Positions 1,136 through 41,997 of a stretch of DNA of 64,000 nt are shown piece after piece (the stretch's first letter is position 1; each line of letters opens with the position of its first letter). The stretch is from Malacoraja senta (lineage: Eukaryota), in NCBI GenBank assembly GCA_038087875.1, contig CM075981.1:72850001-72914000 (forward strand). The letters run 5' to 3'. A model generated the notes under the pieces. That model did no database searches. It saw nothing but the letters and a program-made list of their open reading frames with translations, and was not told where the DNA came from. Made by a program: the position numbers and the translations under genes.

Positions 1136-4100
1136 CTGTAAAATAATGGGAGGAACTTTACAATTTATCTCAATTACCACAGAATGAAGAGATTAGTGAT
1201 AAGAGGGCTGCAAGGAGTCTGAGAGAAGTTGAAAGAGGCATACAAATACTGAAAATAGACAGAAAATGCTGTTGTAACTCAGTGGGACAGGCAGCACCTG
1301 GAAAGAAGGAATGGGTGAACCCATTCTGAATAAAAGATGTGTGAGAATATGCTTATTCCAAAGATGCAGTTTGGTGCGAGAGATGCTCTTGGGAATGGGA
1401 TATAAAGTCGAATACTGTGAAGAAAGTTTGTATTAAACTGTCACACAACAGTCATAGATGAACTGCGGCCAGCTTTGCATGCTTGAAATAAAAGTTGTTG
1501 AGGTGAACGGAAGAATGATAAATGTATTATTTCACCTTATACATACCACTGGAAATCAAGTGCGCACACAGGCAAACGACAGCCAAACATGTCTACTACC
1601 TTCATTGGCAAATCTAGCCCACTGCTTGATTTATGTAGACAAACTCCTAAATCACCGGATCCTATAAAATGATTACAATCTTTAAGATATGGAAAATTGC
1701 ATTAAAATAAATGTTTACTTCCATTGCATTATGGAACTTCTATTTCAGCATTAAATATTCTAAAAAAATATTTTCCTTCAACATCTTCAGGAATCTAAAT
1801 CACTGAATGATCGCAAGTTACCAATATTTCTATGGATACAAAGTTCTTCATCTTTATAAACTTACTACTAAATATTAATATTCAATAAGCTCAGCTATGT
1901 TCCCTGAAATATGACAAAATACATAAACTATTATGACATATTGGAAGATCTCTCATGCTATCATCCTCAATCAGGTCTGATAGTGAAGTAATGTTAAAAA
2001 ATATATAAAATATTCCTAATAGAATACTTGCATATTAAAAGCGACTGTACCTAGCAGCACTGGGTAGTCCTCGGCTTCCAGCCATGGAGTGCAAATATCA
2101 ACATGCTTAAAATACATTTTTTCAATGACACGGTTATAGAATTCCTTTAGTGGACCTTTTCCTGAAAAACAAAATAAATGTAAACATTTTTACATTGGAG
2201 TTGGTTGCTGAAGGTGGGAAGATTAAACTGCAAGTCCAGGCCAGTGGGGAAAAGAAAGAGGATAGATGGGAGAAGGTGGAGTGAGAAAGAAGGTACGGTT
2301 TGGGGCAGTGAAGAAAATCAGTAATTAAGAGTTTTCCGAGAGGAATGAGGAAGAAAGGATGCTGTTCAGAAATATACCTGTAATAGCACAAACCAGGGAT
2401 GGCAATTTCATACCAGCGGTTATCAGTCCTTCATAGTCTGAAAGGAAAACAGAAAAAGATGCTTAAATTAGAGTAAAACAAAAATGCGCAATCCTTCCAT
2501 AATTTTTCATTTAATACTTGTACAGTCCTTTAAAAATAATGTTCATATTTAAACAGAAAGAAAAATAATCAGAAACCTACCCTCTAAAGCTTTTAATAGA
2601 ATGGAGAAGTCTTCATCCTCTGCAAATCAAAGAAGGATAATCCATTATGGTGAAGCCAAGGAGCTTTCTTCTTGGGCCACATAGGAATCTATCGGACCCA
2701 TAAGTCAAGCTTTAGCACATCTTAAGTTAATATGGATAAATATTAAAATAGGTGATGCAAATAAGCGAGTTCGGTATTCCGACTGCGTAAGCCCAGGTCA
2801 TAGGTTACAAGCTATAAAGTCTCGGCAACGGTGGTGCTGCATTGTGTGCAGGCTTGCGTTTCGTCTGGGGTTGGGGTTGGCTCGTCGCTGAGGGTGCTCT
2901 TGAGTTGCCGGGCGCCCGCTGGAGCTGCTGTTGGTGGTGCTGGCGGCAGCAACAACCTCCTCCCTCTCCCTTGCCCAGCCCCAAGCCCAAAGTCTGGGCC
3001 AGCTCCAACTCCAGGTCGGGACTGAAGGCGCCCGCAGCGCGGCACAGTCTAGCGCAGGGCCAGAGGAGGCCGAGCCCAGGCTGGCGCTCTGGCGCAGGCG
3101 AGGTCGGGCCCCAGCTCCTCCTCAGGGTTGTGGATGAAGTGGCAGCGGGTACTGCAGGGGCAGAAGCCGGTGGTGTGGAAGGTGCGTCTTGTACTTGGGG
3201 TGGCAACTGAGGGAGGGCAGGGGTGAACTGGCACTTGTCGCCGTAGCAGCCCATTGGGGAGCGGGTTCCTCTGCAGTTAGAGTGGGGTTGGGCTGGAGTT
3301 GGTGCTGGCTGTGGTTTCTCCAGTTGGCGCTGGCGGCCGGTGCCCCGTCGGTCCGGACGTCCCCTGGCCGGGATGGGACACTCGAGTGGGGGGGGGGGGG
3401 GAGAACCGAGGATGGTCAATTGGCGGTTCGGCAGCGCTTGCGGCGCCGGGGGCTTAGGTTCGATCCTGGTTGCGGATGAGAGCCAGTCCAGTCATCCCTC
3501 CCACCCGGTCTCTCCCCCGCCCCGTCTCCCACCGAAAAAAGACAAAAAAAAAAATCGGGCGCAAACTATACTCACTGAATCTACAGCGCTTCCTTCGAGA
3601 TTTATAGCGTTCGACCTTTGACAAATCCCATGATTCCTTGCATTTTTCGGAATACCGAACTCGCTTATAGATTTCGCTATGTGCTAACAGCACTAAACCA
3701 AGCCCTCTTCCTGCCTTCTCCCCATATCCCCTCTATGCCATATTTCATCTCTATGTTCTATTCTTCCATCTTTCTAGTCCTTCTAAGATTATATCCATTG
3801 GTATCCCTCTCATCACTCCATCCTGTACTATTTTCACTTGACATATATAATGATCCAATTAGTAGTATGCACACCAAACAGCACAATCAGACTGTTTGTT
3901 TTTTTAAAGAAAAATCTTACCTGTCCAGCTAGTACTGCTCATCAGCAATGCTGGTCTTCCTTGGATATATGAGACATCTCCAGTATTAACATTCAGTTCT
4001 GTAAATGCTGTCTGTTCCAAATTGGAAGGCACAGATTCAATCCTAATTTAACACCAAATATACATTGTTATCCAGTGTCTGAAACTGCAAAATTGTGTCA

Positions 4101-7100
4101 TTAAATAGATCTACTTGCCCAAAAAGGTTTTGGAAGTTGATAGTCGTATAATATGTTTATTTTCTATATCTATTTTTGAAATAAAAATATCATACAAAAA
4201 GATTACTTTGCTACCAAGTATTTAATAAACAAAATGTGTTTAACATTTTCATCACACATATACAACATACCTTGTTCTAAATGGTGCAAAATCCTTAGCA
4301 AGCTTCTTAAACAACTTATGTTGCAATTCAAGAGGAGTTTCTTTGAAAATGGGAGATGGGGTATCATATAAAGTGATTGCCCTGTTAAAAAAAAACATAG
4401 CCTTTTTAGAAAAATAGACAAGCACACTCAATGTTCTACAGAAAATTAACCCAAGTAAAATGGTCATTGAATGTCTAGAAAAGCATACAGCTAAAAACTC
4501 CGAATTATGATTTATCTTCTTTTTAATTATTCATATTTGAGATCTGGGTGGTGCTGACGAGGCCAGCATTTATTACCCATCCATAATTGTCGTGAGAAGG
4601 TAATGGCGCACTGCCTTATTGAACTGTTGCAGTCATTTTGGTGGAGACCGTACCCATGGTGCTTTTGGGTAGGGAGTTCCACGATTTAGACCCAGCAATG
4701 AAGGGCCAGCGATATACTTCCAAGTCAGGATGGAGAACTTGCAGGTAATTTGTTCCCAAGCCATTGTCCTTCTTGGTGACATATGTTGCAGATTTGGAAG
4801 ATGCTGTAAGAGGAACCTGGGTGAGTAACCGAGTGCATTTTGTAGGTGATAAATACTGCAATCATTGTGCAGAAGGTGGGAAGAATGAAGAATGAATGTT
4901 TAGCGAGTGCCAATCAAACAAGCTTCAATGTCCTGTATATCGTTGAAGTTGCATTAATTTAGGCTGGTGGAATAATCCATCATGTTCCTGTGTTAACAAT
5001 AGGTCGTTAAATGCTCTCTTGTTGGAGATGGTCATCGTTACATGCATAATATTATGTTCAACTCATTAGCCCATACCTGAATGTTGAATAGGTCTGAATG
5101 TTGAACGACCTGTTTTATCTGCTCAGGAGTTGTGAATGGAATTAAACATTGTGCTATCATCAGCAAACAGCTCCATATCTGACCTTATAATGAAAGGATT
5201 GTCACTGATGAAGACGTTGTGCGTGAGTCACTGCCCTAAAAAAGGCGGTAAGTGATGTCCTGGAACTAGAATGATCGGTCTCTGATGACCACAACTATAT
5301 TTTTTGTACGAGGTACGACTTCAACCATTGATGCAGTTAAATTCAGTTTTACCAAGGCCCCTTGATAAGGGGCCCCTTGATCAGTCAAATGCAGCCTTTA
5401 TGTCGAGAGCAATCATTTAACCTCACCTCTGGAATTAAGCAATTTGGTCCATATTTGAAACAGTCTTGGCAAAACCTAATGTAGGCATTAGGATTATAAG
5501 TGCTTCTTCATAGCACTCCTTAGGAACTAAAACTAAAATTAATATTAGGGAGCTATTTGTATTTTACTTTGGAAATTACTAGAACTGAAGCATTCTGTCC
5601 AATTAAATATCAATTGAAAATTAGAATCTGAGCTGGCTTGGTAATTAGGTTGGAATACTGACCAACTTCTGACTAATATATAATTTTTAGAATTCTACCT
5701 TTTCATACTTAACTCCACAACCTGACTTGATGTAACCAGGAACCTTCCTAAAAACTAATTATTAGCCAGAAACATTCAAATTTCAAAACTCAGCCACAAA
5801 ATACAAGCAGCCCACAATGACACAATAGACATCCGATCTATACATTGCGGGAATAAATAATGACACTAATTGAAGCTACCCAATTAAAGAACGCATAATG
5901 AGCTGGGTTTATAAAACAGAATAATGCTGAAGACATACGTGGATCAGAAAGGTTGAGGGATATGGGCCAAACATGGGAAATGGGACTAGCTTAGATGGGG
6001 CATCTTGATTGGGGGCTTAAAGGCCTGTTTCTTTGCTGTATGACTATTATGATTTTTTAAAGAAATTCTAGTCAATTTTGCTTACATCTACAATGGTTAA
6101 AGTATAAATGCTCACTTAATATTCCAGTTTGTGTTCAAGTCTTCTTTCATGGCTTCACTTACACACAGATTTGAATCAGACAGCTTTCCAAAAAAATGCT
6201 CATACCTATTTAAAAACAAAATCAATGCATAAATAGATTACAATGTGGCATAATGTAATATTATCCACTGAGGTAGAAAAAATATGAACACAGAATATTT
6301 TCAATGAGAGAGAATGAAAGGTGTTACGGTTCAGAGACCCATTTCTGTGCTCCCTGTACACTAACATCCACGTGCTACAAGCTAAACTTGTGGTCTACTG
6401 GGCAGCAATAATCTCTGCCCTCTTCCTGCAATGCACTTCAACAAAAGCTTTTCACTGTACCTCGCTACATATGACAATAAACTAAACTGAAACTGAATCT
6501 GATCATTGCTGTATCTGCAAAATCCTCTATATTCACTGGAGAGAAAAATGAACCAACATCAGTGTCTTCTCCCAGGTTCTATTTGCATTCATCGGGTCCA
6601 TTGAGCTGACCATATTGGCCATGTGCCTGATAACAGGATCCCAAAACAGAATCTATTTTTAACTCTGTCATTGGAAAGAACTACTGGGAGGCAGAGGAAA
6701 AAGATGGAAGGAGATGCTCAAGACCTCTTGAAGAAATACCACATTCACATTAACTGCAGGGAATTTCTTGCTTGGTTATGCCCCTAAAGTACATAGAAGT
6801 CCTGCACAGGTAACGTAACCAGCACACCATCGCACACACCACCCATCTATTTATCTTGTTAGTCACCTTCTGTCTCATCTGTGGAGGGTTCTGAAGCTAC
6901 ACATTACACTCATAGGCACCTCAAAAGAGTGTGGAAGCAAGTTATCCTTGGTGCCTAAGGACCATTCAAGAAGAAAAAAGTGAAATGAATTAGGAAAGCA
7001 AACGATATGTTTGTCTGAAGGGTCCTGAAAAGTCACATATTCTCTCGAGATGCTGCCTGTCCTGCTGAGTTACTCCAGCATTTTGTGTCTATCTTTGGTG

Positions 7101-10100
7101 TAAACCAGCATCTGTAGTTCCTTTCAACACAATATGTTGGGCTTTGTTTTTGGAAGATTTGAATAGAAGATTTGAGACATCTGGTTTAGTCTCACTAGGT
7201 AAGGTAATTAAGGATAGAGGAAGTGCCACAAAAGCTCGTCAAATTGATTCATGGTTGGCAGATTTGTCACAAGAGGAGATGATGCAGGCTGGAGCTACAC
7301 CTTCGAGTATAGCAGAAGGTGGGTCAATCTCATTGAAATATACATTATTCTTGTTGGGACTTGACAGGTAATTGCAGGAATTACGTTTGCCTTGGCTGGG
7401 GTATCTAGAGTCAGGGTTATACATTCATGACTGACACATGAAGACATTTCTTCAGCCTGGTGATGGCGAGTCAGAATTAGGTCATTTGGCCCATGCTGTC
7501 AAGGTTCAGTCATCTGCATGTTCAAGCAAAGATGAATACAGTCTAAAAAAGTGTGCTGGAGTAACTCAGCAGGTCAGGCAGCATCGCTGTAATACATGTA
7601 TAGACGTTTCAGTTTGGGACCCTTCTTCGGACTAATAATAGTAGAGGAGGAAAGTTGAAAAAGAGATGGAGGTGGAAAAGCATAGCAAGTGACAGGTGGA
7701 TACTGAGAGGGGTGGGGAGAAAGATGGGGTGGATACTGAGAGGGGTGGGGAGAAAGGTGGGGTTCCCAACCTGGGATAAATTTACCCCCAGGGAGTAAAT
7801 TTCACCTACCCAGGGGGTAAATTTGTTGATTCTGGATTTGTAATCTCATTGACTGATTGTGTTTGGTTCTGGTATACCAGTATCTGTTCATCATTAGTTG
7901 TTCATAAATAAGTGAAATAACATTGTTATGTGCTATTAAAGTTGCCAGGGGTAAACGGGACAAAAAAGGTTGGGAACCCCTGCTGTAAGATAAGAACAGA
8001 AGAGGATTGAAATGTAAAGTTAGAGGAAAGGATATAGGTGGTAGGGAGCAGCAGAAGGATGGTCATAAGTGATTGGAGCAGAATTAGGTCATTTGACCCA
8101 TCAAGTCTACTCCGCCATTCAATCATGGTTGATCTATCTCTCCCTCCAAACCCCATTCTCCTACCTTCTCCAAATAACCCCCGACACCTGTACTAATCAA
8201 GAAACTATCTCCAGATATATATAAATACATTTTAGGTATAAGGGTATCCAGGAATATGGGTAGTGCAGGAATATGTCACCGAGGTAAAAGATCAGCCGTG
8301 ATGTTACTGAACGAAGCAGGTGTGAGAGGCCTATTGTTACTTGTATGTTCTTATGTTATAGTTCATCAGTTGTCTAAAAGCCCTGTCCCACTGTACGAGT
8401 TCATTCAAGAGTTCTCCCGAGTTTGCCCTGATTCGAACTCGGAGATTTACGGTAATGGCCGCTCGTAGGTACTCTGGGCTCTGGTGGACATTTTTCAACA
8501 TGCTGAAAAATCTTCACGAGTCTTCCTGAGCTTACCGCGTTTCCCAAGTACCTGCCGTTAGTGTTACGAGCCGCTAAGAGACGTCCCCGAGCTCCGACGT
8601 ACCCGCTACGTACATTCTATGTGCTTCCATGAGTTTGATTTTTTATTTAAACTCGGAAGAGCTCTTGAATGAACTCGTATTTGTGCGAAACAATAAAATT
8701 TACTGATTCTTCAAGTAAACAGTGTATAGAACAGCCATAATAAGATGTTTAAAAAAAATCAAAACTACATATAGAAAATCATTCTGTGCTTACCATTTGG
8801 CAATCAGCACAATCAGATGATGATCTCCATGTGTCAGTCCCATAATAGTGTAACCATAATTATGCCAGTCAATAATAAATTTACTTCCTCTTAACAAACA
8901 TACTGCCCACACAACTGCAATAGCAGGGAGGCCTGGAGGATTCTGTTTGAAATTGTTAAAAAAAAAAGCACAGAAAATTTAATCTTATCAATTTATTATA
9001 ATTCAGAGAAAAGAAAGCCAAAAAGAGCCAATCTTCTACCTGCAGCAGCATGTACGATGGTGGATCAATCCTTAAGAGGACATAACATATTTGCAACGTC
9101 TGCACAAAGATCTTGACCCCATATTGAAAAATCTTTGGTCCAACTATAAAATTTAAAACAAATCTCAACCCTTTGAAAACAGTGGTTACAAAACATTTAA
9201 AAATATCTTTGCATCACAGACGTTTTTTGTTTTTAACTAAAGTTAAATCCTTATCAACGACTGGGTTAATTTGGTATGTTCAAATTGCTTTCTTCTACAT
9301 TTTAATATTAATAATAAAATGTGTTCGTTTGTAAACATCATGTCTCTACAAGCATTTCAAACACTCTTGTCTTTTGGCCCCTTTTTCTTGTGCCGGCTTT
9401 TATAGGGGTATCTCATTAATCCCATTCCCATGCTCTTCCTCCACACTCCTACAAATTTGCTCTTTCACAAGCCTATTGGGAGTTACAACTGAATCTCCTT
9501 CCATCACTCTTCCAGGCATAGATTTTACAATGTGATCTCTGTATTTCCACTCCTCCAATATTTTTGGCTAGGTACTCTTAAATTTATGTCTTGATTACTG
9601 GCCCACATGGCAGTTGAAACATATTTTCCATACGTAATTTTCCCAAGCATTGTTTGGCTTAATCATGCTGGAGCTGGAACATTATTCAGACTCTCCACAC
9701 ATCTGTAATAACCTTGCCTGAATACAAAGATGGAATCGCACGGGGCATCTGGATCTTGGAGATATAGGAAAGCCTCCGTGGCCTGTGTGTCTCAAGGGAC
9801 ATACAATGGAGGCTCCGACAAAGACTAGAGAGCATAGCTTTATGGTGAAAGTGACAAAGTTTAAAGAAGATCTGCAGGGCAAGTTTTTTTTTGTGGTGGG
9901 TGCCTGGAACACACTGCCAGGGATAGTGGGGGATGCAGATGCAACAGGGCATTTAAGAGACTTTCATGTGGGCACATGGACATCCATGGATATCCTGATG
10001 ACCTAAAGCCATTGGGCTATTAAACAATACAGCTTCCAATAAGCTCTGAACTACATAGGACTATTATTATTATTGCACTGTTATTGTTAGTTTTTTAGGT

Positions 10101-13100: not shown

Positions 13101-13490
13101 TTGTGTAGCTGGGACATGTTTGGCAGGTGTGGGCCAGATGGACCGAAGGGCCTGTTTCCACACTGTATCACACTATGACTTGTAGAAGGTGGCTAGTTTA
13201 GCCTTGGTCTTGAACGCACCGGGATAGCCGACAGCAGTGACACTGAAGCCGTGCCGGGCCAGCGACAGCGTGTGGTACAACATGCGGGGGCTGCGGCCCA
13301 GGTCGCCCATCACCAGCACACAGACGGAGCGGCGACTGCTGCCTCCTCGGCCTCGCCGCCGGCGACTCCACACGACCGGCACCAACAACAACAACAGCAG
13401 CAGTAGTAGAGCCACGCTCGCACCCGCGAGGTAAAGACTGCAGAGGGAAACCGCCAGGAATAAAGCGGATAGAAACCACAACGCCGCCAT
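1060..13490 (-). CDS. ALG1: ALG1 chitobiosyldiphosphodolichol beta-mannosyltransferase, gene span of coding exons 1-12 (final exon not found in window)
   Basis: Twelve GT-AG exons join in frame and give the diagnostic motifs [66 protein letters not shown] and [11 protein letters not shown]. Confidence 0.97.
1547..1661 (-). CDS. ALG1: ALG1 exon 11 ([27 protein letters not shown])
   Basis: 115 bp, AG/GTATG boundaries. Confidence 0.95.
2051..2161 (-). CDS. ALG1: ALG1 exon 10 (KGPLKEFY...[13 protein letters not shown])
   Basis: 111 bp, AG/GT boundaries. Confidence 0.95.
2378..2437 (-). CDS. ALG1: ALG1 exon 9 ([20 protein letters not shown])
   Basis: 60 bp, AG/GT boundaries. Confidence 0.93.
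2581..2619 (-). CDS. ALG1: ALG1 exon 8 ([13 protein letters not shown])
   Basis: 39 bp, AG/GTAGG boundaries. Confidence 0.94.
2761..3668 (-). mobile_element. TIR element carrying ZFP36-family fragment, internally deleted copy, in ALG1 intron 7
   Basis: Perfect 21-bp TIR ATAAGCGAGTTCGGTATTCCG / CGGAATACCGAACTCGCTTAT; internal YGDKCQFT and [22 protein letters not shown]. Confidence 0.85.
3921..4042 (-). CDS. ALG1: ALG1 exon 7 (...[13 protein letters not shown])
   Basis: 122 bp, AG/GTAAG boundaries. Confidence 0.94.
4271..4381 (-). CDS. ALG1: ALG1 exon 6 ([24 protein letters not shown])
   Basis: 111 bp, AG/GTATG boundaries. Confidence 0.94.
4520..5480. mobile_element. Degenerate LINE fragment
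   Basis: Decayed RT-like text (antisense FADD-like motif near 5160) and a repeat-like end; boundaries approximate. Confidence 0.45.
6116..6205 (-). CDS. ALG1: ALG1 exon 5 ([23 protein letters not shown])
   Basis: 90 bp, AG/GTGAG boundaries. Confidence 0.94.
7757..7982. mobile_element. hAT-like MITE
   Basis: TIR GGGGTTCCCAACCT / AGGTTGGGAACCCCTG. Confidence 0.65.
8378..8679. mobile_element. PIF/Harbinger-like MITE (one end truncated)
   Basis: TAA then AAGCCCTGTCCCAC terminus; inverted homologue of 21130-21453. Confidence 0.75.
8794..8942 (-). CDS. ALG1: ALG1 exon 4 ([10 protein letters not shown]...DWHNYGY...IAKW)
   Basis: 149 bp, AG/GTAAG boundaries. Confidence 0.95.
9040..9143 (-). CDS. 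ALG1: ALG1 exon 3 ([10 protein letters not shown]...YMLLQ)
   Basis: 104 bp, AG/GT boundaries, homologous peptide. Confidence 0.94.
10690..11300 (+). mobile_element. LINE (Rex1/Babar- or L2-like) RT C-terminal fragment with an inverted 5' piece
   Basis: KKAHQ.LYFL..RKF motif at ~10930; antisense copy of the same motif at ~10700-10810. Confidence 0.6.
11622..11702 (-). CDS. ALG1: ALG1 exon 2 ([22 protein letters not shown])
   Basis: 81 bp, AG/GTAAG boundaries, phase 1-1. Confidence 0.92.
12616..13175 (+). mobile_element. CR1 LINE 3' fragment in ALG1 intron 1
   Basis: [34 protein letters not shown]...[10 protein letters not shown]. Confidence 0.93.
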
Positions 13491-13660
13491 AACGCCAACG
13501 GCGGGAGGAGGAGCAGCAACGACGTGGCTGCAGCGCGAAGCCCGCGCGTGGGCGCACAGTCAACGCAGCCGGGGCCCCTAGTGGAACCCCGGACCCTGCA
13601 TTCCTGCATTCACTACAAAGCCTCTGTGCTGCTGCTGCTGAACCAGGAACATGCGCGCTA
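13200..13660. promoter_or_regulatory. CpG-rich island over ALG1 exon 1 / probable promoter
   Basis: High GC and CpG density against an AT-rich background, overlapping the ALG1 start. Confidence 0.65.
13220..13490 (-). CDS. ALG1: ALG1 exon 1 (signal-anchor + [21 protein letters not shown])
   Basis: ATG at 13490; GT donor after GYP-G; lies in CpG-rich sequence. Confidence 0.95.
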
Positions 13661-13917: not shown

Positions 13918-14049
13918 NNNNNNNNNNNNNNNNNNNNNNNNNNNNNNNNNNNNNNNNNNNNNNNNNNNNNNNNNNNNNNNNNNNNNNNNNNNNNNNNNNN
14001 NNNNNNNNNNNNNNNNNNNNNNNNNNNNNNNNNNNNNNNNNNNNNNNNN
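13918..14049. other. Assembly gap (N run)
   Basis: Run of N. Confidence 1.
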
Positions 14050-18700: not shown

Positions 18701-21700
18701 GCAGCTGTGTGGCAGCAACTCTACTAGTTACGCCACTGTGTTGCTTAAAGGGCAGGCTGTTTTTTGGGGACTCTTTAAGATTAAGTCTTTCAGTCAATTG
18801 ACCCTTATGCTGAGGAGAAGCCTACTATGATTGTGTCCTTCATTCAAGAAGGAGATGAAAATTGGTCTAGCCTGCTGAGTGTGTCCAGCATTTTCTCATA
18901 TTACTGCTGTTCAGGAAGTTGTATGTTGGAGATGTGTTGCTAGAATGACCCTGAAGGATAGGCTTTCTTTCCTTCCTCCAACCTCTTCTGGCAGGTTGTT
19001 CAGTGGGTCTTTTCCCATTTCAACTTTCAGTCATGCTGGGGTCTGGGCGAGTAGCCCCAAATCAACCATCTCCTCACATACACCGAAGCCATCTTGAGGT
19101 AAAACTCCCATGCAGTGTAGTTGTCTGCAATCAAGTACACATATCCACCTCCTGCAAGTATGGTGACTAGTTTTATTTCACAATAAAGCTTTATAAAAAT
19201 CACGCAGAAAATTATAGTTTCCAAATACCATCCCTAATTATTCTCATTTCTAAGTACGTTCCTTGGGAACTAAGAGTGCTATGTCCTTATTAAGCACCCT
19301 TTTACTGGATGTCAACTGTATCTACGACATTCTAATCTCCAAGTCTGAAGGCCGGATTGTCTTAACCTGCGCTGGAGCCTCGAGTGCAAGGTTTAGGCTG
19401 AGGTTTGAGTGCAGTTTTGTGAGAGTGGAGAACAATCATATTTTGTTTGGGATAATTAAGGAAGCTGATAGGGGAAATATGAATGAAACAATCGTGAAAC
19501 TCTTGAAACATACCACTGTTAAATTAGAAAATGTCCAATACAGACGTATCCCTAAAGACAATTGACACCTTAATGAGTAAGAGTAACTTTTACTCCTGTA
19601 CTCCAACGTTTAGAGAAACTGTGCTATTTGTATGCTTGATGTCAATAAGCGAGTTTGGTATTCTGACTGCGCATGCCCAGGTCATAGGTCACTAGTTATA
19701 AACAGTCTCGGCAACGGTGGTGCTGCATTGTGTGCAGGCTTGCGTTTCGTCCGTAGTCGGGGTCGGGCCCGGCTCTACGTCGCTGCAGGCGCTGTCTAGT
19801 TGCTGTTGGGCCATTCCCGTCCCCTCCACGGTGTCCCGTCCCTGTCTGGAGGTGTCCAGGGTGGCCCTGGGCTGGCGGGGCGGCGCTGGACTTGCAGTCG
19901 CTGGCTCCAGCTCAGCTCTGCCTGTTCTGCTGGATTGGCCGGCAGCCCTCCACCTCCACCCCCCTCCCCTCAGTCCGACACCGAGATCCTGCTGAAGATG
20001 GGCAGCCGCCGGCCCTGCTCGAAACCGGGCGATTCGGAGCCGCTGCTGCTGGAATCGCCCTGGTCGGAGAGAGAGTCTGTGGATGGGCTCCTGGCGGCAG
20101 CAACAACCCCCTCCCCCTCCCTTGCCCAGCCCCAAGCCCAGATTCCGGGCCAACTCTAGGTCGGGGCTGAAGGCCGCCAGCTGCGCTGCCCAGTCGAGCA
20201 CTGGGCCGGAGGAGGCTGAGCCCAGGCTGGCCCTCTGGCGCAGGCGAGGCTGGGGCCCTCGCTCCTCCTCGGGGTTGTGCTAGAAGTGGCAGCGGGTACC
20301 GTAGGGGCAGAAGCCGGTGGTGTGGAAGGTGCTCCATCTTGTACTTGGGGTGGCGGCTGAGGGAGCACAGCTCCGCCAGGCTGTGGGTGAACTGACACTT
20401 GTCGCCATAGCGACCCATCGGGGAGCGGGTTCCTCTGGAGTTGGGCTGGAGTTGGCGCTTCTTCTCCGCACTGGCTGTGGGCCTGGGGCCGCTGGTGTCG
20501 CCAGACACGGTGGTGGTTGGCCCGGCGGGAGAGGCGGAGGTGAGCTGAGGTTGGTGCTTCTCTGCGCTGGCTGTGGGCCTAGGGGCCGGTGTCCTGTCGG
20601 TCGGGACGTCACCGGCCGTCCCCCCGGGCAGGGATGGGACGCTCGAGTGGGGGGACGGGGATGGTCCAGTGGCAGTTCGGCACCGCTTGCTGCGCCGGGG
20701 ACTCGGGTTTGATCCTGGCTGCGGATGAGGCGTGGGTCTGTGTATGTGCAGCTGCCGAGAGCCGGTCCAGTCAACCCCCCCCGTCTCACACTCGCATCTG
20801 CCCCTCTATCTGCCCCCTGACAAATACAAACTTGAAAAAAGACAACAAATTGGACCCAAACTAGACTCACTGTATCTACAGCGCTTCATTCGATTTTTAT
20901 TTATAGCATTTGCCCTTTGACAAATTCCATGATTCCTTGCGTTTTTCGGAATACCGAACTCGCTTATTCTGGTGGAGGTCTCTGATGGATTTAAGATTAT
21001 TATTGTATTTGTTTCCATTCAGAAGTGACTCATTTAAAGTTTAAATGGTTATGAAAGAACTGCAGATGCTGGAAAAATCTAAGGTAGACAAAAATGCTGG
21101 AGAAACTCAGCGGGTGAGGCAGCATCTAATAGCCCTGTCCCATGGTACAAGTTCATTCCAAGAGCTCTCCCGAGTTTAAAAAAAATCAAACTCGTGGTAA
21201 GCACGGAGAATGAACGTAGCGGGTACGTCGGAGCTCGGGGACGTCTCTTAGCGGCTCGTAACGCTAATGGCAAGTACTCGGGAAGACTCGCTAACGGCAG
21301 GTAAGCACGGGAAGACTCGTGAAGATTTTTCTTGAAAAATGTCCACGAGAGCCCCGAGTACCGACGAGTGGCCAATACTGTAAATCTCCGAGTTCGAATC
21401 AGGGCAAACTCGGGAGAACTCTTGGAATGAACTCGTACCGTGGGACAGGGCTTTAAGGAGCAAAGGAATAGGTGACGTTTCGGGTCGAGACCCTTCTTCA
21501 GACTTTTTATTTTTTAAGTTTAAAAATATGTTTCCCTTTGAAAGATGGGCTGGATCCTTCTGATTATGGCGGGAGGCTCTAATCAAAATTGCCACTACTT
21601 AGCGTTTAAAGCTGGATCAAGCCCTATGAATTGTTAACATTTGAAACTAATGGACAGACTTAGAAGCTTATATTGGTTTATTTGCCCCACTGTTGTACTC

Positions 21701-24700
21701 CTTGTGGACTGGAACATTGAAGCTCAATTTTGCTGGGATTAAGCAGCATGATCAGTTTAGTTTATTGTCACGTGTACCGAGGTACAGTGAAAAGCTTTTG
21801 TTGCACGCTAACCAGTCAGCGGAAAGACAATGCATGATTACAATCGAGCCATTCACAGTGTACAGATACATGATAAGGGAAGAACGTTTAGTGCAAGATA
21901 AAGCCAGTAGAGTCTGATCAAAGATGGTCCGAGGGTCACCAATGAGTTAGATAGTAGTTCAGGACTGCTCTCTAGTTGTGGTAGGATGGTTCAGTTGCCT
22001 GATAACAGCTGGGAAGAATCTGGAGTTGCGCGTTTTCACACTTCTATACCTTTTGCTTGATAGGAGAGGGAAGAAGAGGGAGTGGCCTGGGTGCGACTCG
22101 TCCTTGATTATGCTGGTAGCCTTGCAGCATAAAGTGGACAAGCGCTTTTCAATTTTTTTTACGGGTGCACGATTGGAGATACTATTGATTTTAAATGGTT
22201 AAGATTTAAGACATTTTAAAGGAAGGTAACTGTTCAAACTTATTTTTGCTTTCATTCAATTCCTAATTTTATCAACAAGAATTACAGTGAGATCTTGATC
22301 AATTGGGCCAAAGAATTTCAAATAAAGTTTAATTCAGATCAATGTGAAGTTCTGTATTTTGGGAAGATGAATGAGGGCAGGACCATTACAGACTCCCGGT
22401 AAGTATTGTATAGCATAGTGATCTAGGAGTAAAAATACCTGGTTCATTGAAAGTAGCACCACAGGAAGATTGGTGAAAAAGGCTTTTGACACAAACCTGA
22501 GAATCATATTATTGGATAAGATAATCTTGAGATGTTATCACAAGAGTTTGCAGTTTAATTTTAATTTTGCTAATAATTATTGATATTGGGATATTTTATT
22601 TCTTTGCCTAGTCTATCCAAAATTGCTAAATATAAATCTTTGGACTCTAAGTCATCGATGGAAAACAACACGCAAAGCACAAGTTAAGGCTGAAGGGAAA
22701 GGCCCAGATTGTGCTGACAATCATTCCATGAAGCCATGCCTTATTCATTTATTGACTGTTTGGTATGTCCTGTCTTTGCTTCTATAAATTGTTTGTACTG
22801 TACAACAGATAAAGGTCCACTCAAGTAGGGAAAATAAGTATCATAACTCTCCTAATACAGATCACGACAATGAAACACTTAACATAACTTTAATAATTCT
22901 TCAAACATCATATCAATATCTCTTTTCAATACAAAATGTAATTTATCTCTAGGCTGAAACCAAGTAAGCAATATGTTGTTCTATTCATCAGGGTTTAAGA
23001 CTTTCAAGAATTTAATCACAGCTTAATGATTTTATGAATATTTTATATGAGGCATCAATTGTAATTTTAGCTTGGTGATGTATTTGTAAGAGATGTTTGA
23101 GGTTTAAGTTTTCATCCTGATATCTATCTATCTATATACTATTAAAACTGTGTGTGTGTGTGTGTGGGTGTGTGTGTGTGTTTGTGGGTGTCAGATTTGG
23201 CCTTTGATTCCTTGCTCCGCCAAAACCACACGCGAAAACTCCGAGATTTTTTCCATTCCGCTAGACATTACACTTTTACATACCCTAACACACCCATTAT
23301 TAGATTTAGACATTTTTATGTACACATTTTAAAATAAAATCCCCCCCCCCCCCCCCCCCCCGTCCACTCACTCATTTTGTCGCCTCCTGCTGGCCAGCCA
23401 ACATAACGGCTGCTGCCACCCGGCTCTGCTCCAAAAACGCCGACATTTTTTTTCTTTCACTGGCGATTTTTGCAACTGCCACCTGCCTCTCCTCCATTAC
23501 CTCCCCCCCCCCCTCCCCCCCGGGCCGGCTCTCTCACGCTGGCTCAAGCGCCCGGCTCTCCTCCAAAAACACCGACATTTTCATTTTTTCCCAGGCGATT
23601 TTCACTGCTGCCGCCCGGCTCTCCTCCAATACCCCCCCCGGCCGGCTCTCTCACGCTGGCTCAAGCGCCCGGCTCTCCTCCAAAAACAACTACATTTTTC
23701 TTCATTCGCGGGCGATTTTCACTGCTGCCGCTCGGCTCTCCTCCACTACCCCCCACCCCCCCCGGGCCGGCTCTCTCACACTGGCTCATGCCAAACATCG
23801 GCTCTTCCCCCTCTGCTTTTCGCCGTCCTCTGTTCGAGGACGCCGAAAAGCAGCGGCGGAACAACCCATCTTTGCCTTCAGCCAGCGTGACAGAGCCGGC
23901 GCGTCAACGGCCTGTTGGCCCGCAGCCCCATTGAGGGCGTATGCAGCGTCTCGACGGCCTAACGCAGCGTCTCGACGTCGTACACAGCGTCTTGACGGCA
24001 TAAGCCGCCTACGCCCCCTACGCCGTCAAGACGCTGCGTACGACGGTGAGACGCTGCGTACGGCCGTCCAGGTGCTGCCTACGCCGTCAAGACGCTGAAG
24101 CACGTTCGGGAACCAGACCCCGGGGTCTGAAGCACGTTCGGGGACCAGACTCAACGGGTCTGCACTTGGTCCAGTATCTGTTAAAAATGATAAACTGACA
24201 GCTCTGCTCTTATTTTACCACTCCTAGTTTAGATGGTTACTTTTGTGAGATCAAAGACAGATTAAAAAGTGGATGCTGGAGAAGGCCAATCAACCCAGTG
24301 AGCCTTCTATACCATTTCTATGTGATGGTGGCTGAACATGAAAATTAAGTCACCTGTTCTGCCTTCACTCCTGATCTCTTGATGTCCTTAGCCTTTTGAA
24401 CCATATCTATCTCCGTCATGAATATATGTAATAAATTGATTTTGGCTTCCTTCTGTGGCAGAGAATTTCACAGGTGTACCATTCTTTTGGTCAGGAGTGT
24501 GTTTTCCTCCAACTGAATGAATTACTCTGTACCCTTGGGCTGTGGCCCGTGGAACTGAACTTCCCACTGTCCACCTGAGCTGCATAGTCTAGTCAGGACT
24601 TAATATGTCTCAACAAGGGTTCCTCTCATTCATTTATTCTAGCAAAAATCAGCCCAATTGTCCAGACTATTATTCATGCCAACTTCAGTGGAATCGATCT

Positions 24701-27700
24701 GTTGATTCTTCAGTGGAATCGATCTGTTGATTCTTCAGTGGAATCGATCTGGTGATTCTTCAGTGGAATCGATCTGGTGATTCTTCAGTGGAATCGATCT
24801 GGTGATTCTTCAGTGGAATCGATCTGGTGATTCATCAGTGGAATCGATCTGGTGATTCTTCAGTGGAATCGATCTGGTGATTCTTCAGTGGAATCGATCT
24901 GGTGATTCTTCAGTGGAATCGATCTGGTGATTCTTCAGTGGAATCTCCCCACAGCATGAACATCCTTCCTCAGATAAAGAGACCAAAACTGTACATCGAT
25001 TAGCACGCAACAAAAGCTTTTCATTGTACCTTGGTACACATGACAAAAAAGTAAATTAAACACTGAGCTCGAGATGCCAGTAAATTATCCCAGTTTCTGC
25101 ACTCATTTCCTCTTCCTATGAAGGCCAACAACAAAATTTGCCTTGCTGATACCTGGTTTGTTTGCAAGGTTGATTTGCATGTTATCCAATCAGATCAGTT
25201 ACTACTACACATTAATACAATCAAGTTAAACTCAAGTACAATAAATAGGGCAAAGTACTATAGTGCAGAATACAGTTATGGAGATCAGGCAGGACAATGG
25301 AGACGAGGTCAAGCTCAGATCACCCATGATCTTACTGAATGGCACAGCAAGTTTAAATGTATGAAAGATGACTCCTATTCCTATTTCACATGTTCTTGTA
25401 GATATGATTTAACATTTTGTTTCTACCGCTTCTTTGACAATTTCTCTAATCTGCAAGGGTTATTGCAAATGAATCCCATAATAGCAGGTTTGTTTGTGAT
25501 CACTACAAATTTCATGAAATACTGGGCAAGAGCTGGCCCACAATGAAGAATGTACTTCAAATTGCTCGAGGAACTGTACCAAATCTAAACATTTAGCTCC
25601 TGATTTTATATCACTGAATTGCTTTTGGGGGAGGGAATTATAATAAGAATGTGAATCCTATAAAGTCAGCTAAAATTGTACCTCAAACTATCAGGCAAAT
25701 GATACAAAAGCTTGAAAGCACACACCTTCAGACTCGGGAACAGCTCCCTTGCCTCTGTTCTCAGGTTAAGAACAGTTCTCACACACTTTAGAGCTAATCC
25801 CGATCTTCCAACCTTCCTTCATAGCGACAATGGACTTTTTCTCTATAAATGTAACACTACAATGCTGTAAAACTATATTTTTCACTCTGTTATTGTTCCC
25901 TTTGTACTACCTGTTGTAGTTGTGTATGATTTGATTGTACTCGTGTATAGTATGACATGATTTAATTGATTAAACAAAAGCTCTTCATTGTATCTCGGTA
26001 CACATGACAATAGTATACCTATACCAAGAGAACAGCAAACACCAGCAGCTTCACTTGGGGATGACAGAACGGTATCATTATCACCCCAGATAAATCCAGA
26101 AAAGTGTCAATGCTTCAGAAACCATTCTTATTTCTATGGCAATCTGCACAGAAAATAAATGGGTGTGGAAACCTGGCTTTGAATGACAGACAGTAATAAT
26201 TATTTTTACAGGGTGATTAGTTAATAATATAATTTCACATGAGCTGCTATTGTCATAATCCACAAAAACAAATTATGTGAATATATTTTTATTCTTTAAA
26301 AATTAAGGAGGAAATCTGATGCGGAGTGCACGGAAACATTGAAATGTAGGAAGTTGTCGGTAATACTAAGTTGCCCAACACACTCCATGCTACAACAGTT
26401 CATGTACTTTATTGTTGCTGAGATGGTAAGTAAAATCATTGACTCAATAATAGCATTGATTGATAAAACAGTTGCACCCATTGCTGTCATAATTCCTTAT
26501 ATAGTAAATATAATGCCTGCCTCAATTTATAGAGCATTAGTTACGTACAGTCAGATAAAACAAGTCTGTCCCAAGGTTGACTCATGAAAATGAGAATGAA
26601 AAGTGTTTGAGCACTTCACAAACACTGCAATAAATCACCTGGACCAACCATCTTCCTGCCCAATCAGGGTTGAAATGCTTTTGGTGACAAAAGCAAAGCT
26701 AATTACCTACTGAGATTCCCTAGAATCAGTCCATATGCTTTTACCTACAATTCAAATCACACAGAAAAGGTCTTTGACTACTGCCACGTACTGTGTTTCT
26801 CAACTGAATAGCTTTGAGGTTCAGTTTCTGTATAACAGTTGAAATCTTGGAAAGTTACTGGGTCAGAATGTACTGTGATAATAAAGTGAAAGTTAATCAT
26901 CATCTCCCCTCTATCAAAGGCACCATTATTTATCAGGAATATAGACATAAGGCGGCAGCATTTCTGTTGCCATTCAGTTTATATTACAGCAGGACATAGA
27001 AACATAGAAAATAGGTGCAGGAGTAGGCCATTCGGCCCTTCGAGCCTGCACCGCCATTCAATATGATCATGGCTGATCATCCAACTCAGTATCCTGTACC
27101 TGCTTTCTCTCCATACCCCCTGATCCCTTTAGCCACAAGTGCCACATCTAACTCCCTCTTAAATATAGCCAATGAACTGGCCTCAACTACATTCTGTGGC
27201 AGAGAATTCCAGAGATTCACCACTCTCTGTAAAAAATGTTTTTCTCATCTCAGTCCTAAAAGATTTCCCCTTTATCCTTAAACTGTGACCCCTTGTTCTG
27301 GACTCCCCCAACATCGGGAACAATCTTCCTGCATCTAGCCTGTCCTACCCCTTAAGAATTGTGTACGTTTCTATAAGATCCCCCCTCAGTCTTCTAAATT
27401 CCAGCGAGTACAAGCCAAGTCTATCCAATCTTTCCTCATATGAAAGTCCTGACATCACAGGAATCAGTCTGGTGAACCTTCTCTGTACTCCCTCTATGGC
27501 AAGAATGTCCTTCCTCAGATTAGGAGCCCAAAACTGTACATAATACTCCAGGTGTGCTCTCACCAACACCCTGTACAACTGCAGTAGAACCTCCCTGCTC
27601 CTATACTCAAATCCTTTTGCTATGAAGGACGTTTCTGCATACTTTATAATTTACTTATTAAAAGTCTGATCTTGTTAGTGTGTATATGTGTATATGTGTG

Positions 27701-36700: not shown

Positions 36701-39650
36701 TGGCAAATTGAATATAATGTGGGAAAATGTGAAATTACCCATCTTGGCAGGAAAAATAAATGAGCGTATTATCTAAATAATGAGATGTAGTGGTTCTTGG
36801 TGTCCTAGTAAGCGAATAGAATGCAGGTACAGCAAGTAATTGGGAATGTCAACAAAATGTTATACAGGTAGTTTATTGTGAGAGAAAATAAATACCAAAG
36901 TTTCATGAAACTAAATTTCAGTTACACCAGGTATTTGTGTGACCACATCTGGCGTGCCAAGAATCCTATTGTGCTCCTTGCCTGAAGAAAGATGGTAATG
37001 TTTTGGAAGCAGTTTAGAGAAAGTTTACACGACTAATACCTGGAATGGGCAGAGGTGTTATCAGAAAAGGTTGTACAAGTTGTGCTTGAATCCACTGGAG
37101 TTCAGAAGAATGAGAAGGCGTTTTCAGAGTTAATGTAGAGTTTTCTTCCCCAATAACCCCCAGTATCCATAACCTTGGGCTCACTGTTCAAAATGAGGTC
37201 TGCATTAAAGGCAAATGGGTGAAAGCTTTTATCTCTCGGTGGATTGGGGGGTCTTTGGAACTTCCATAGAGATCCATAATTCGAGACGTGGCATACTGAA
37301 GGCTTCTTGTAAAAGGTATCATACGTTCTCAATACTATAGTCGCTACAGCTTCACCTCCCCAGCTCACATCCTTGCCTGCAAAGTCCACATTCCTTGAAC
37401 AAAATTTAAAAAGCAATACTTTCACTTAGATTTTTCTTGGATATAATCAACCTCCCAGTCTAGTAAAGTGCGAACATTTTAAAATTAAAACGTGCAATAT
37501 ATTTTTAAACATATAATGACACATATGCATTCTGTTGAAAATGGTGAATGTTTCCCCACAATTCATGCTTTGTATTTCACATAAAATGAGGCAGGTCTTC
37601 AGCCTTAACAGAAGTGACGTCACAGACAGACCTTGTGGCAAAGAGGCATCACAACCCGTCTTATCCAAATTACAGCCCATCTTGTCCTAGAAATATCTTA
37701 CTGTTTCCCCCGTTGTTGATCGGTCTACTCAACTCCCTATCCAACAGCACTTGGGGGAGGACATGTGTCGGAACCGCGACAGTTCAAGAGGGTGGCTCAC
37801 CACCATCTTTTCCAGGATAATTAGCTATGGGCAACAAATAATAACCCTCCAGCAACACCCATATCCTATAAATGAAGTAAACTTGCAGAACATATTAACT
37901 TCAAAATGCACCATAGCAACTTGCCAAGTTTCTGCAATGATACTTCATCAAACTGTGGTATTTACAAAATGGAAATAAATATGCAGGGTATAATTGAGAA
38001 TGTAATTTCATCCAAATTCTGCTGCAAGTGACTGTTCATCCTTACTTGGAAATCTATTGTTGTACCTCTGTTGCTGGGTCAAAATCGTGGCTTTGCAACT
38101 TGCTATTTTTTCTGAAATTAGCTTTAATTTAGTTTAGAAATATAGTATGGAAACAGGCCCTTCGGCCCACGAAGTCCACACCAACCATCAATCGCCACTA
38201 GTTCTATGTTATCCTACGCACTCAGGGGAATTTACAGAAGCTAATTAACCCACAAACCTGCATGTCTTTGGCATGTTGCAGGAAACCAGAGCACCCAGAG
38301 AAAACCTTCGCGGTCACAGGGAGACAGACAAATTTTGCACAGACAGCACGCATAGTTAGGATCAAACCCGGGTCTCTGGCATTGTGAGGCATCCGCTCTA
38401 TCGCTGCGCCACTGTGCAGCCTAGAAATAAGAAAAGCTATATGTGCAAAGCAGTTTATTTATTTATTTATATATTTATAATTTTATTTTATTAGAAGCAA
38501 TTGTACAGAGATAAAACATTCGGCATCTGAAAATTATACAATTATTGTACAGCTTCATGTTTAACCTTATAACCTAAATTATGAAAATGAAAAAAAGAAA
38601 AGAAAGAGAAAACAAGAAAGAAAAGAAGTAGAAAGTGAAAAGATAGATTGAAGAAGTACAAAAGAGAATCCCTTAACTACCAAAGCAGTGTAGCAGAAAG
38701 ATAAAGGAATAAAAAATAAAAAAAAATAAAAGTGGAGATATACCTTGTCCCTCGTCCCCCCGCCCACCTCACCCAACCCAGCATCGGATTTAAATTATAT
38801 GTGCAAAGTAGTTGTAGCCTATTTTAAAGATTATGAACACTTTGTCTTTGTGTGTTTTTTTTGTTGTGTTTTTGTGCTTGGAGGGGAATAAGATGAGGCC
38901 AGCAACGTGGCGACCTTTGTGTACAGCCTCAGTGTAATCAACTATCCTTACACTATTGTACTTGATAATAATGGTGCCTATGTATAGTAAGAGTTTTACT
39001 GAACCATATACAAAAAAAGACATTTAATGTACTTTGGTACATGTGACAATAGTGTACCATTGAACCATTGATTATTTGGCTATAGGTTCCACCAGCAGAA
39101 GCTTCAGTCCTTTCTAACTCATTTAAGACAATAAGCACACAGAATGACGTGTACTAGAGTTGGAGCTAGTATCTCATTTGTTATCATTGGTAATCATTTC
39201 ACTATGAGTTAGACATTTATCACTGTTCTGAAAACATAAAACTATCATTGGCTGACTAACTTTTAACAGTAACTTTTTTTCTATATGCCAACAATTTTTT
39301 CTATGGTTAGTTTGTAAGGGCAGGTTAATCGGGCTAGGTTTAAGTTTCCTAAATTGCGTTTGGCGTAAAAAGATATTCACTCCAACACTGAGATATGCCA
39401 TCCACATGATAAGCCATTATTTCATGCAAATGATAAGAATATTCATATTTTGTACATCTTTGCATAATTGAAACTATTACATGTCTAACAAATCTGTGAA
39501 GTCCAACGAATAGATATGAATTTTTACCTGCAGAGATATGACAATTAAAATCTTTACTTCCTTTCAGGTGAATGCTCAAAACACCTGGCTGTCTATGGAG
39601 GAGCAGCTCTGGTTGGTTTTCTCCGTTTCTATGCCACTAATAATGGCTAG
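15558..39650 (+). CDS. C16orf89: C16orf89 (UPF0764)-like secreted protein, copy A, gene span (7 coding exons, ~307 aa)
   Basis: Exons 15558-15720, 16578-16730, 22612-22762, 26308-26425, 28851-29004, 35099-35200 and 39568-39650 splice in frame (924 nt). Peptides resemble recalled human C16orf89 (NLDG, RDIFMENIMFCGMGGFSDFYKLRW..ILSWQ..GCF). Sits head-to-head with ALG1, next to which human C16orf89 also lies. Confidence 0.85.
16578..16730 (+). CDS. C16orf89: C16orf89-like A exon 2 ([14 protein letters not shown]...INEPKDYK)
   Basis: 153 bp, polypyrimidine-CAG acceptor and GTAAAC donor, phase 1-1. Confidence 0.85.
18341..18612. repeat. Perfect inverted repeat, 111-bp arms, 50-bp spacer (duplicate at 47422-47693)
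   Basis: 18341-18451 is the exact reverse complement of 18502-18612; the right arm lies in a degenerate SINE. Confidence 0.93.
19645..20967 (-). mobile_element. TIR element carrying ZFP36-family fragment, in C16orf89-like A intron 2
   Basis: Same TIRs (2 mismatches at the left end), 1323 bp, flanks unrelated to those of the 2761 copy. Confidence 0.87.
19970..20420 (-). pseudogene. ZFP36/TTP-family CCCH zinc-finger gene fragment (frameshifted)
   Basis: [25 protein letters not shown] / [21 protein letters not shown] and C-terminal [35 protein letters not shown] lie in different frames. Confidence 0.88.
21130..21453. mobile_element. PIF/Harbinger-like MITE with TAA TSD (duplicate at 50212-50535)
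   Basis: AGCCCTGTCCCA...TGGGACAGGGCT TIR, TAA on both sides, nested in a Penelope-related short repeat. Confidence 0.82.
22612..22762 (+). CDS. C16orf89: C16orf89-like A exon 3 ([16 protein letters not shown]...[10 protein letters not shown])
   Basis: 151 bp, TAG/GTATGT boundaries; W-x5-W and C-L-x-x-L-L pattern as in the human exon. Confidence 0.82.
23123..24174 (+). mobile_element. Non-autonomous Helitron-like element, family 1 (duplicate at 52202-53223)
   Basis: 5' A|TC; 3' hairpin CAGACCC-AAC-GGGTCTG followed by CTAG|T (CCAG in copy A); no TSD. Confidence 0.72.
24683..24945 (+). repeat. 25-bp minisatellite CTTCAGTGGAATCGATCTGGTGATT, ~10.5 copies
   Basis: Direct tandem units with no spacers. 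Confidence 0.95.
26308..26425 (+). CDS. C16orf89: C16orf89-like A exon 4 ([34 protein letters not shown])
   Basis: 118 bp, AAG/GTAAGT boundaries; conserved Cys spacing. Confidence 0.82.
26995..27625 (-). mobile_element. CR1 LINE 3' fragment (duplicate at ~55965-56595)
   Basis: [37 protein letters not shown] ... GTGY*, with microsatellite tail. Confidence 0.93.
27645..28389 (+). mobile_element. Non-autonomous Helitron-like element, family 2 (duplicate at ~56618-57365)
   Basis: Same 3' hairpin + CTAG|T end as family 1; internal duplicated block; 5' end approximate. Confidence 0.65.
28851..29004 (+). CDS. C16orf89: C16orf89-like A exon 5 (MRCS...LCLKMMEVN...RNIFLEN)
   Basis: 154 bp, TAG/GTAAGT boundaries. 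Confidence 0.88.
29614..30165 (-). mobile_element. Penelope-like retroelement 3' fragment, GIY-YIG endonuclease remnant (duplicate at ~58590-59141)
   Basis: [36 protein letters not shown]; 17-bp TSD CCCCTCTAAATATTTAA. Confidence 0.88.
32741..33875 (+). mobile_element. CR1 LINE ORF2 3' part (300-aa ORF at 32874-33776) preceded by a Penelope-related short repeat
   Basis: [12 protein letters not shown]...CEVIHFG...RPHLEYC..FWSP; (TTTCTATG)n tail. Confidence 0.95.
33883..34924. mobile_element. Non-autonomous TIR DNA transposon (hAT-like TAG...CTA ends)
   Basis: TAGGTATGTTACAAAA / TTTTGTAACATTGCTA; ATAATTG on both flanks. Confidence 0.75.
35099..35200 (+). CDS. C16orf89: C16orf89-like A exon 6 ([31 protein letters not shown])
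   Basis: 102 bp, CAG/GTGAGT boundaries; most conserved block. Confidence 0.9.
35430..37130 (+). mobile_element. Old degenerate CR1 RT fragment, interrupted by later insertions
   Basis: Remnants of [17 protein letters not shown] and CEITHLG motifs. Confidence 0.65.
35746..36523. mobile_element. Tc1/pogo (Tigger-like) non-autonomous element with TA TSD
   Basis: TA|CAGTAAACT ... AGTTTACTG|TA; GC-rich internal ~120-bp repeats. Confidence 0.65.
38130..38420 (-). mobile_element. tRNA-derived SINE (antisense)
   Basis: Antisense box-B-like GGATCAAACCCGGGTC; body shared with repeats at ~11800-12000, ~18470-18740 and ~30880-31020. Confidence 0.6.
39568..39650 (+). CDS. C16orf89: C16orf89-like A terminal coding exon ([27 protein letters not shown])
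   Basis: CAG acceptor, phase-compatible with exon 6; resembles the family C-terminal GCSxH..AALxGFL block; AATAAA at ~40028. Confidence 0.78.
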
Positions 39651-41832: not shown

Positions 41833-41997
41833 NNNNNNNNNNNNNNNNNNNNNNNNNNNNNNNNNNNNNNNNNNNNNNNNNNNNNNNNNNNNNNNNNNNN
41901 NNNNNNNNNNNNNNNNNNNNNNNNNNNNNNNNNNNNNNNNNNNNNNNNNNNNNNNNNNNNNNNNNNNNNNNNNNNNNNNNNNNNNNNNNNNNNNNNN
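41833..41997. other. Assembly gap (N run)
   Basis: Run of N. Confidence 1.

Follow-up and report, generated by a model that had tools for sequence, protein, structure and literature searches.

We describe here a DNA transposon that carries a piece of a host gene and is found in three copies, termed A, B and C, in a 64,000-nucleotide stretch of the genome of the skate Malacoraja senta (the window; GenBank assembly GCA_038087875.1, contig CM075981.1, positions 72,850,001 to 72,914,000). With a probability of about 0.8, these copies represent an old, high-copy family of non-autonomous skate transposons that are bounded by terminal inverted repeats (TIRs) and hold some 0.5 kb taken from the last exon of a ZFP36L-like gene, which acts in mRNA decay. 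The original prediction, made from the letters of this DNA, was of a Pack-type TIR element with a captured ZFP36-family fragment, and this description holds. Both ends carry TIRs, the element has neither a transposase gene nor any other coding capacity, the cargo comes from an exon of a host gene located elsewhere, and the chimeric structure is common to unrelated sites. The copies and their parts lie at the following positions of the window.

2761 to 3668 (908 bp): copy A, with exact 22-nt TIRs at 2761-2782 and 3647-3668 and unrelated flanks, between ALG1-like minus-strand open reading frames (ORFs) that resemble exons
2907 to 3250, minus strand: cargo of A, the matching exon-2 fragment, with the 5' breakpoint as in B and the C-terminal RLPIF part deleted
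19645 to 20967 (1323 bp): copy B, with TIRs of 21-23 nt
19645 to 19665, plus strand: left TIR of B, with 2 mismatches to the family 21-mer
19666 to 19766: left subterminal backbone of B, 88.5% identical to A
19767 to 19947: GC-rich filler of B, partly absent from A, unmatched in the parent locus ±10 kb and without Pfam hits
19948 to 20412, minus strand: cargo of B, a ZFP36L-like exon 2 fragment that makes up about 465 of the 1323 bp of the element
20413 to 20679: GC-rich filler of B with an internal duplication (28-nt repeats), largely absent from A
20680 to 20727, plus strand: stretch of B resembling a short interspersed nuclear element (SINE), with 36-40 nt that match part of an abundant ~300-bp skate repeat at about 83% identity
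20728 to 20946: right subterminal backbone of B, about 69% identical to A
20947 to 20967, minus strand: right TIR of B, an exact 21-mer
48726 to 50049: copy C, 99.8% identical to B with the same flanks, inside a tandem duplication (42660-64000)

With up to 3 mismatches allowed, the 21-mer ATAAGCGAGTTCGGTATTCCG has six matches in the window (2761+, 3648-, 19645+, 20947-, 48726+ and 50029-), and the six sites form three inverted pairs (2761/3648, 19645/20947 and 48726/50029). All of 100 shuffled controls gave 0 matches, and the TIRs thus stand far above chance. The arms are an exact 22 nt in copy A and 23 nt at 91% identity in copy B, and the size of the element varies from 0.9 to 1.3 kb. When A and B are aligned, homology starts at the TIR and runs inward, and the flanks outside the TIRs are unrelated. 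Adjoining the TIRs, the two copies have in common a backbone of about 100 bp on the left and about 220 bp on the right. The composite had been predicted to have moved as a unit, with a relative at 2761-3668 that has the same ends, and the common 5' breakpoint of the cargo together with the different flanks of A and B supports this. A Pfam scan of the tested frames of the elements gave a sub-threshold zf-CCCH match from the cargo as its only signal and no transposase coding capacity, and two ORFs of the element (297 and 75 aa) returned no matches as protein homology queries.

Copy C has a different history. It was overlooked in the original prediction, which counted two independent insertions; these are A and B. 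The identity of B and C extends at least 345 bp into the flank on both sides, and the two copies lie in the units of a tandem duplication of about 21 kb (14448-35258 versus 42660-64000, 98.3% identity, several indels). Copy C is a segmental duplicate of B and not a separate insertion. Since C lies in the tandem duplication with the flanks of B, the window contains two independent insertions and one segmental copy.

The cargo of B keeps the end of CCCH finger 1, the RHPKYK linker, finger 2 and the C-terminal RLPIF part, and it spans residues ~119-289 of a 289-aa skate protein plus about 20-27 nt of 3' untranslated region (UTR), with the stop codon at 19970-19972. Homology of both A and B to the parent gene starts at a single point, the R-Y-G-D-K-C codons midway through finger 1 (residue ~119 of 289), and in B it stops about 20-27 nt past the stop codon. 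On the minus strand of B the YGDKCQF..RHPKYK segment, finger 2 and the C-terminal piece fall in three different frames. This copy has suffered two frameshifts and one in-frame stop (20280-20282); most contigs from the sequencing runs described below read AT, not TA, at this position, so that the stop is gone there. Copy A has further deletions and is without the C-terminal third including the RLPIF motif. Because of the frameshifts, the stop, the deletions, the missing start codon and the loss of the first half of finger 1, no working RNA-binding protein can come from these copies, and the cargo is now decaying neutrally.

Several comparisons bear on the source of the cargo. In BLASTN the cargo of B (19948-20412) and that of A (2907-3250) match ZFP36L-like exon 2 of Rhinoraja, Leucoraja erinacea and Amblyraja radiata at 83-91%, with E values down to 1e-118. 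Counted over ungapped aligned columns, A and B are 88.6% identical, cargo and gene 88-92%, and the genes among themselves 93-97%. The best donors in tblastn are skate proteins, with Rhinoraja longicauda at the top (290 bits), and the closest proteins are XP_055519735.1 (Leucoraja), XP_032870229.1 (Amblyraja) and the ZFP36L2-A-like protein of Rhinoraja longicauda. An exhaustive search with the C-terminal piece gave chondrichthyan ZFP36-like proteins, and its follow-up listed ray, skate and shark orthologues; a PDB search with the C-terminal peptide returned only chance matches to ribosomal L15. Finger 2 of A fits structure 1RGO (TIS11d/ZFP36L2) with E=1.3e-7, better than 1M9O (tristetraprolin). 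The first assignment to ZFP36/tristetraprolin was thus correct as to the ZFP36 family, while the donor is a ZFP36L-type gene and not tristetraprolin proper.

In the parent ZFP36L-like gene, exon 1 encodes 14 aa and is separated by about 1 kb of intron from a large exon 2, and no TIR was found within 10 kb of it in three skate genomes. The common 5' cargo breakpoint of A and B argues for one capture. We infer that the cargo is an internal piece of one exon which was captured once, at the DNA level, before the family spread. In a tree of cargo and skate genes, which is poorly resolved (supports 36-86), the cargo falls among the skate genes and not outside them. Taken with that reservation, the tree would date the capture near the radiation of these skate genera, after the split from the species of protein P0010.

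To see how the family is represented beyond the window, Logan contigs of eight coded organisms, each with one public run, were mapped (the letters of the organisms are unrelated to those of the copies) onto B and A. Summed contig depth, which is a proxy for copy number and not a count, was 18-53 in single-copy flanks, 14,000-160,000 in TIR bins and 1,000-50,000 in cargo bins, and on the element, at 2,000-100,000, it reached about 10^2-10^3 times that of the single-copy flanks in the eight runs. One run comes from the species of the window itself, with a flank depth of 46.6 and not a single difference over 528 nt; here the ratio to the flanks was about 1,600-2,200 at the ends of the element and 180-1,080 in the cargo. 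Each run placed 3,400-4,500 contigs on a 1.2-kb stretch, and single cargo variants were backed by up to 70 contigs. Since there are thousands of contigs per run and many contigs per variant, many diverged copies are required independently of depth. These data indicate a family of hundreds of copies, possibly more than 1,000. At the 5' cargo border, which comprises the end of finger 1 and the adjacent filler (20393-20470 in B, 3221-3260 in A), depth is 10-50 times that of the rest in organisms B, C and E, where it reaches 200,000-330,000, and it is not raised in organisms A, D, F, G and I. In some species this piece seems to have multiplied on its own.

The insertions are not recent. Organism D has contigs that run across the junction of insertion B, and organisms E, F, G and I have such contigs for insertion A; the flanks are 1-5% diverged. 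As the insertions are found at the same sites in related species, both predate these speciations, and because they are shared, no empty site was found in the eight organisms. Internal-deletion forms recur across species as well, for example a joint that skips 20014-20282 in four species. A gauge of age is given by the divergence of the cargo from the parent gene, about 8-12% over aligned columns. The original prediction of a spreading high-copy family is therefore borne out for copy number, by the depth in the eight runs, and not for present activity, since the insertions are old and common to several species: the family is an old, fixed, high-copy Pack-TIR for which ongoing spread is unsupported.

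The mapped contigs also define the ends of the family. In each run hundreds of contig ends diverge from A one base beyond the 21-mer, into unrelated A/T-rich sequence. In their consensus, A-ATAAGCG is preceded by a C at the left end and CGCTTAT is followed by TG at the right end. Because this consensus extends past the 21-mer, the family terminus is most likely one of 23 nt with CA...TG ends, CAATAAGCGAGTTCGGTATTCCG, so that the predicted 21-bp TIRs, although real, were probably read two bases short. The CA at 19643-19644, just before the left TIR of B, agrees with the longer terminus. Several runs give the loose ends the consensus TTA|CA...TG|TAA; others have TTT|CA or TG|AAA. The TTA/TAA flanks are compatible with a TA target, as in Tc1/mariner elements, or a 3-bp TWA target, as in PIF/Harbinger elements; the two sides are mirror images and not direct repeats.

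Which superfamily the element belongs to can only be guessed. The CA...TG ends, the A/T-rich targets and the richness of the host in Tc1/mariner elements make a Tc1/mariner-like transposon the most plausible choice. Skates and rays are reported to be much richer in these elements than sharks, with a Tc1/mariner content of 3.3% in the host lineage (PMC12361510). A Crypton-like origin, which had been proposed as a candidate, was dropped in view of the clear TIRs; Cryptons, which encode a tyrosine recombinase, are not known to have TIRs. Five AT-rich (31-35% GC) eukaryotic metagenome contigs (L007-L011; OBLZ.., OCZB..) carry a different repeat that ends in A-ATAAGCGAGTTCGGTATTCCA. The terminal 21 nt of this repeat are the same as those of the skate element and nothing else is alike, which hints that the terminal 21 nt are part of a wider transposase family. 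The match may reflect a related transposase or horizontal spread.

Some observations weigh against our account and have to be set beside it. No target-site duplication (TSD) is legible at A or B in a brute-force scan over offsets and lengths of 2-10, and none of at least 3 bp fits both copies. Beyond the 23-nt terminus the flanks read ATG/ATT at A and TGT/TGG at B, and the dinucleotides next to the 23-nt ends of the window copies are GT/TG and TG/AT, neither TA nor TWA. The TA or AT duplication that had been read at the junctions does not survive, as both readings sit inside the conserved terminus. Scans of sequence collections found no autonomous partner or transposase, and the eight organisms gave no empty site, so that the case for mobility is built on the number of copies and the differences between their flanks. 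The TIR had no match in collections of viral and prokaryote genomes. About 450 bp of the GC-rich interior are without a match in the parent locus ±10 kb and without a Pfam family in any frame. The depth figures, as said, are a proxy. Depth in the TIR bins exceeds that in most cargo bins by a factor of 2-10, and many family members may therefore be without cargo. Finally, the cargo spans no intron, and capture of a piece of cDNA remains conceivable.

This last point leads to the question of whether a processed ZFP36L retrocopy, made by a long interspersed nuclear element (LINE), landed in an ordinary miniature inverted-repeat transposable element (MITE) and the composite was then amplified. As the cargo lies wholly in one exon, the missing intron is uninformative, and LINE/SINE activity in this genome is massive: the repeat at 21017-21467, directly downstream of B, has a depth of 10^6-10^7 versus about 47 in the flanks, in all four species tested. 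However, a 5'-truncated retrocopy should retain the 3' end of the mRNA. The parent mRNA contig (L002) has a 3'UTR of about 400 nt, of which the cargo of B retains only the first 20-27 nt, and there is no poly(A) or A-run at its 3' junction and there are no direct repeats flanking the cargo inside the element. Because both ends are cut inside the exon or the 3'UTR and poly(A) is missing despite the long parental 3'UTR, we agree with the original prediction that the cargo is not a retrocopy, and regard the detour through a MITE as unlikely.

Transposition could be dispensed with altogether if a locus with a ZFP36L pseudogene between inverted repeats had spread by segmental duplication. This is what happened to C, which shares the flanks of B within the 98.3% tandem duplication. 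Homology of the flanks beyond the TIRs, the observation that according to the original prediction would speak for duplication, is present only between B and C. Between A and B nothing is common outside the TIRs and duplication is refuted; the depth of 10^2-10^3 times the flanks with thousands of contigs in each of the eight runs, and the hundreds of contig ends that diverge at the termini into unrelated A/T-rich DNA, likewise speak against it, and we give duplication as a general explanation next to no credence. Also to be considered is a cargo native to a larger mobile element or virus, of which the short elements would be deletion derivatives. Teratorn of medaka, a fusion of a piggyBac element with a herpesvirus, does have a ZFP36-like gene (PMC5601938), and TIR bins that are deeper than cargo bins mean that other TIR-bearing forms exist. 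Yet the cargo is 88-92% identical (ungapped) to an intron-containing skate gene and sits among skate genes in the tree, it starts in the middle of a finger without upstream coding continuity, and no larger element was seen. We find such an origin very improbable.

Capture by a TIR transposon is hence the explanation we prefer, and its steps would have been as follows. A fragment of the ZFP36L exon would have been copied once, at the DNA level, into one element. This probably happened when a break at a transposon was mended by gap repair or with template switching, which is the Pack-TIR or transduplication route. The composite would then have been mobilised in trans by a transposase encoded elsewhere, most plausibly a Tc1/mariner-like enzyme, and amplified in an ancestor of these skates. 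Any present effect of the copies would act via intronic sense or antisense RNA, which is speculation; the RNA evidence is thin, with three probable RNA runs containing 5% of the sampled words. A bolder version seems improbable to us, namely that one transposase system caused a burst of Pack captures in skates, with the ZFP36L family as the most prolific, and that intronic fragments feed small-RNA or antisense control of the parent gene. If true, such an effect on the parent gene would amount to an epigenetic conflict as proposed for plant Pack elements.

The surroundings of copy A give a weak hint as to its orientation. Minus-strand ORFs at 931-1164, 8793-8978 and 13176-13559 read like ALG1 exons, including an N-terminal membrane segment. 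A protein atlas gave a weak hint of the Glyco_transf_4 type for these ORFs, and Pfam and PDB searches of them gave no match. If this reading of the ORFs is right, the cargo of A might be sense to the ALG1-like gene.

Inside copy B, the filler contains a 28-nt direct repeat (20461-20488 and 20557-20584, 96 bp apart) that is absent from A and is an internal duplication younger than the capture. Near the right end, a candidate TATA box and a mini-exon with ATG and GTGAGT were considered and dropped, the ATG being absent from A and the TATAAA motif belonging to an imperfect subterminal inverted repeat. A tRNA-like piece inside the element was rejected as well. ARAGORN found none, Rfam gave nothing at the gathering or E-value thresholds, a lone match to GNAS-AS1 (E=0.13) being due to chance, and the piece matches instead the abundant skate repeat of about 300 bp. 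This repeat, which we take to be a tRNA-derived SINE although neither ARAGORN nor Rfam calls it, occurs at about eight places in 22 kb of skate DNA (for example L001 3484-4122) and also in the window at 38239-38421. As to the tandem duplication, an N gap precedes each unit (13918-14049 and 41833-41997), and both units contain a tandem array with a period of 25 bp (24658-25100 and 53701-54043). The duplication could be recent and real, or an artefact of assembly or haplotypes.

In plants, much exon shuffling goes back to gene fragments that TIR transposons have captured. In animals such capture has looked rare and nearly always single-copy. A vertebrate family with a piece of a host exon at hundreds of copies means that this transposition-dependent route can run at scale in animals, and it suggests that surveys that mask high-copy repeats would miss such families. 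There are practical consequences, too. In skate and ray genomes, hundreds of ZFP36L-like fragments can lead to spurious paralogues, to gene models that are false and to RNA-seq reads mapped to the wrong place, and insertions that are shared between species are dated markers for batoid phylogeny.

Like the animal Pack-TIRs and the plant Pack-MULE and Pack-CACTA elements, the skate family consists of non-autonomous TIR elements with a host-gene fragment from elsewhere, and the composite transposes. Intronic insertions, where chimeric transcripts are possible, are a further likeness to Pack-TIRs. A survey of 100 animal genomes, which targeted young cases, found 4 of 370 Pack-TIRs to be multicopy, and its worked example has three copies (Tan et al. 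2021, Nat Commun, PMC8277862). In contrast to these few-copy, young cases, the skate family is old and is estimated at 10^2-10^3 copies. With the Tc1/mariner-derived MITEs of batoids (PMC12361510) it shares TIRs of about 23 nt, CA...TG ends, a size of 0.9-1.3 kb, high copy number and A/T-rich sites. However, no TA duplication is legible at A or B, and ordinary MITEs are without a host exon. Host coding sequence inside a TIR element that has moved is also known from Ssk-FB4 of Drosophila melanogaster and Turmoil-1 of C. elegans (PMC8277862, PMC2572040). These are few-copy, and Ssk-FB4 holds a near-complete expressed gene, whereas the skate cargo is a decayed, truncated exon with no start codon. 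Compared with ZFP36L1 and ZFP36L2 (TIS11b/d), the cargo has nothing of exon 1, of the N-terminal region or of the front half of finger 1, and it contains frameshifts and a stop; it is not a gene. Thus, at 10^2-10^3 copies the skate family is an outlier among animal Pack-TIRs, of a kind that is known.

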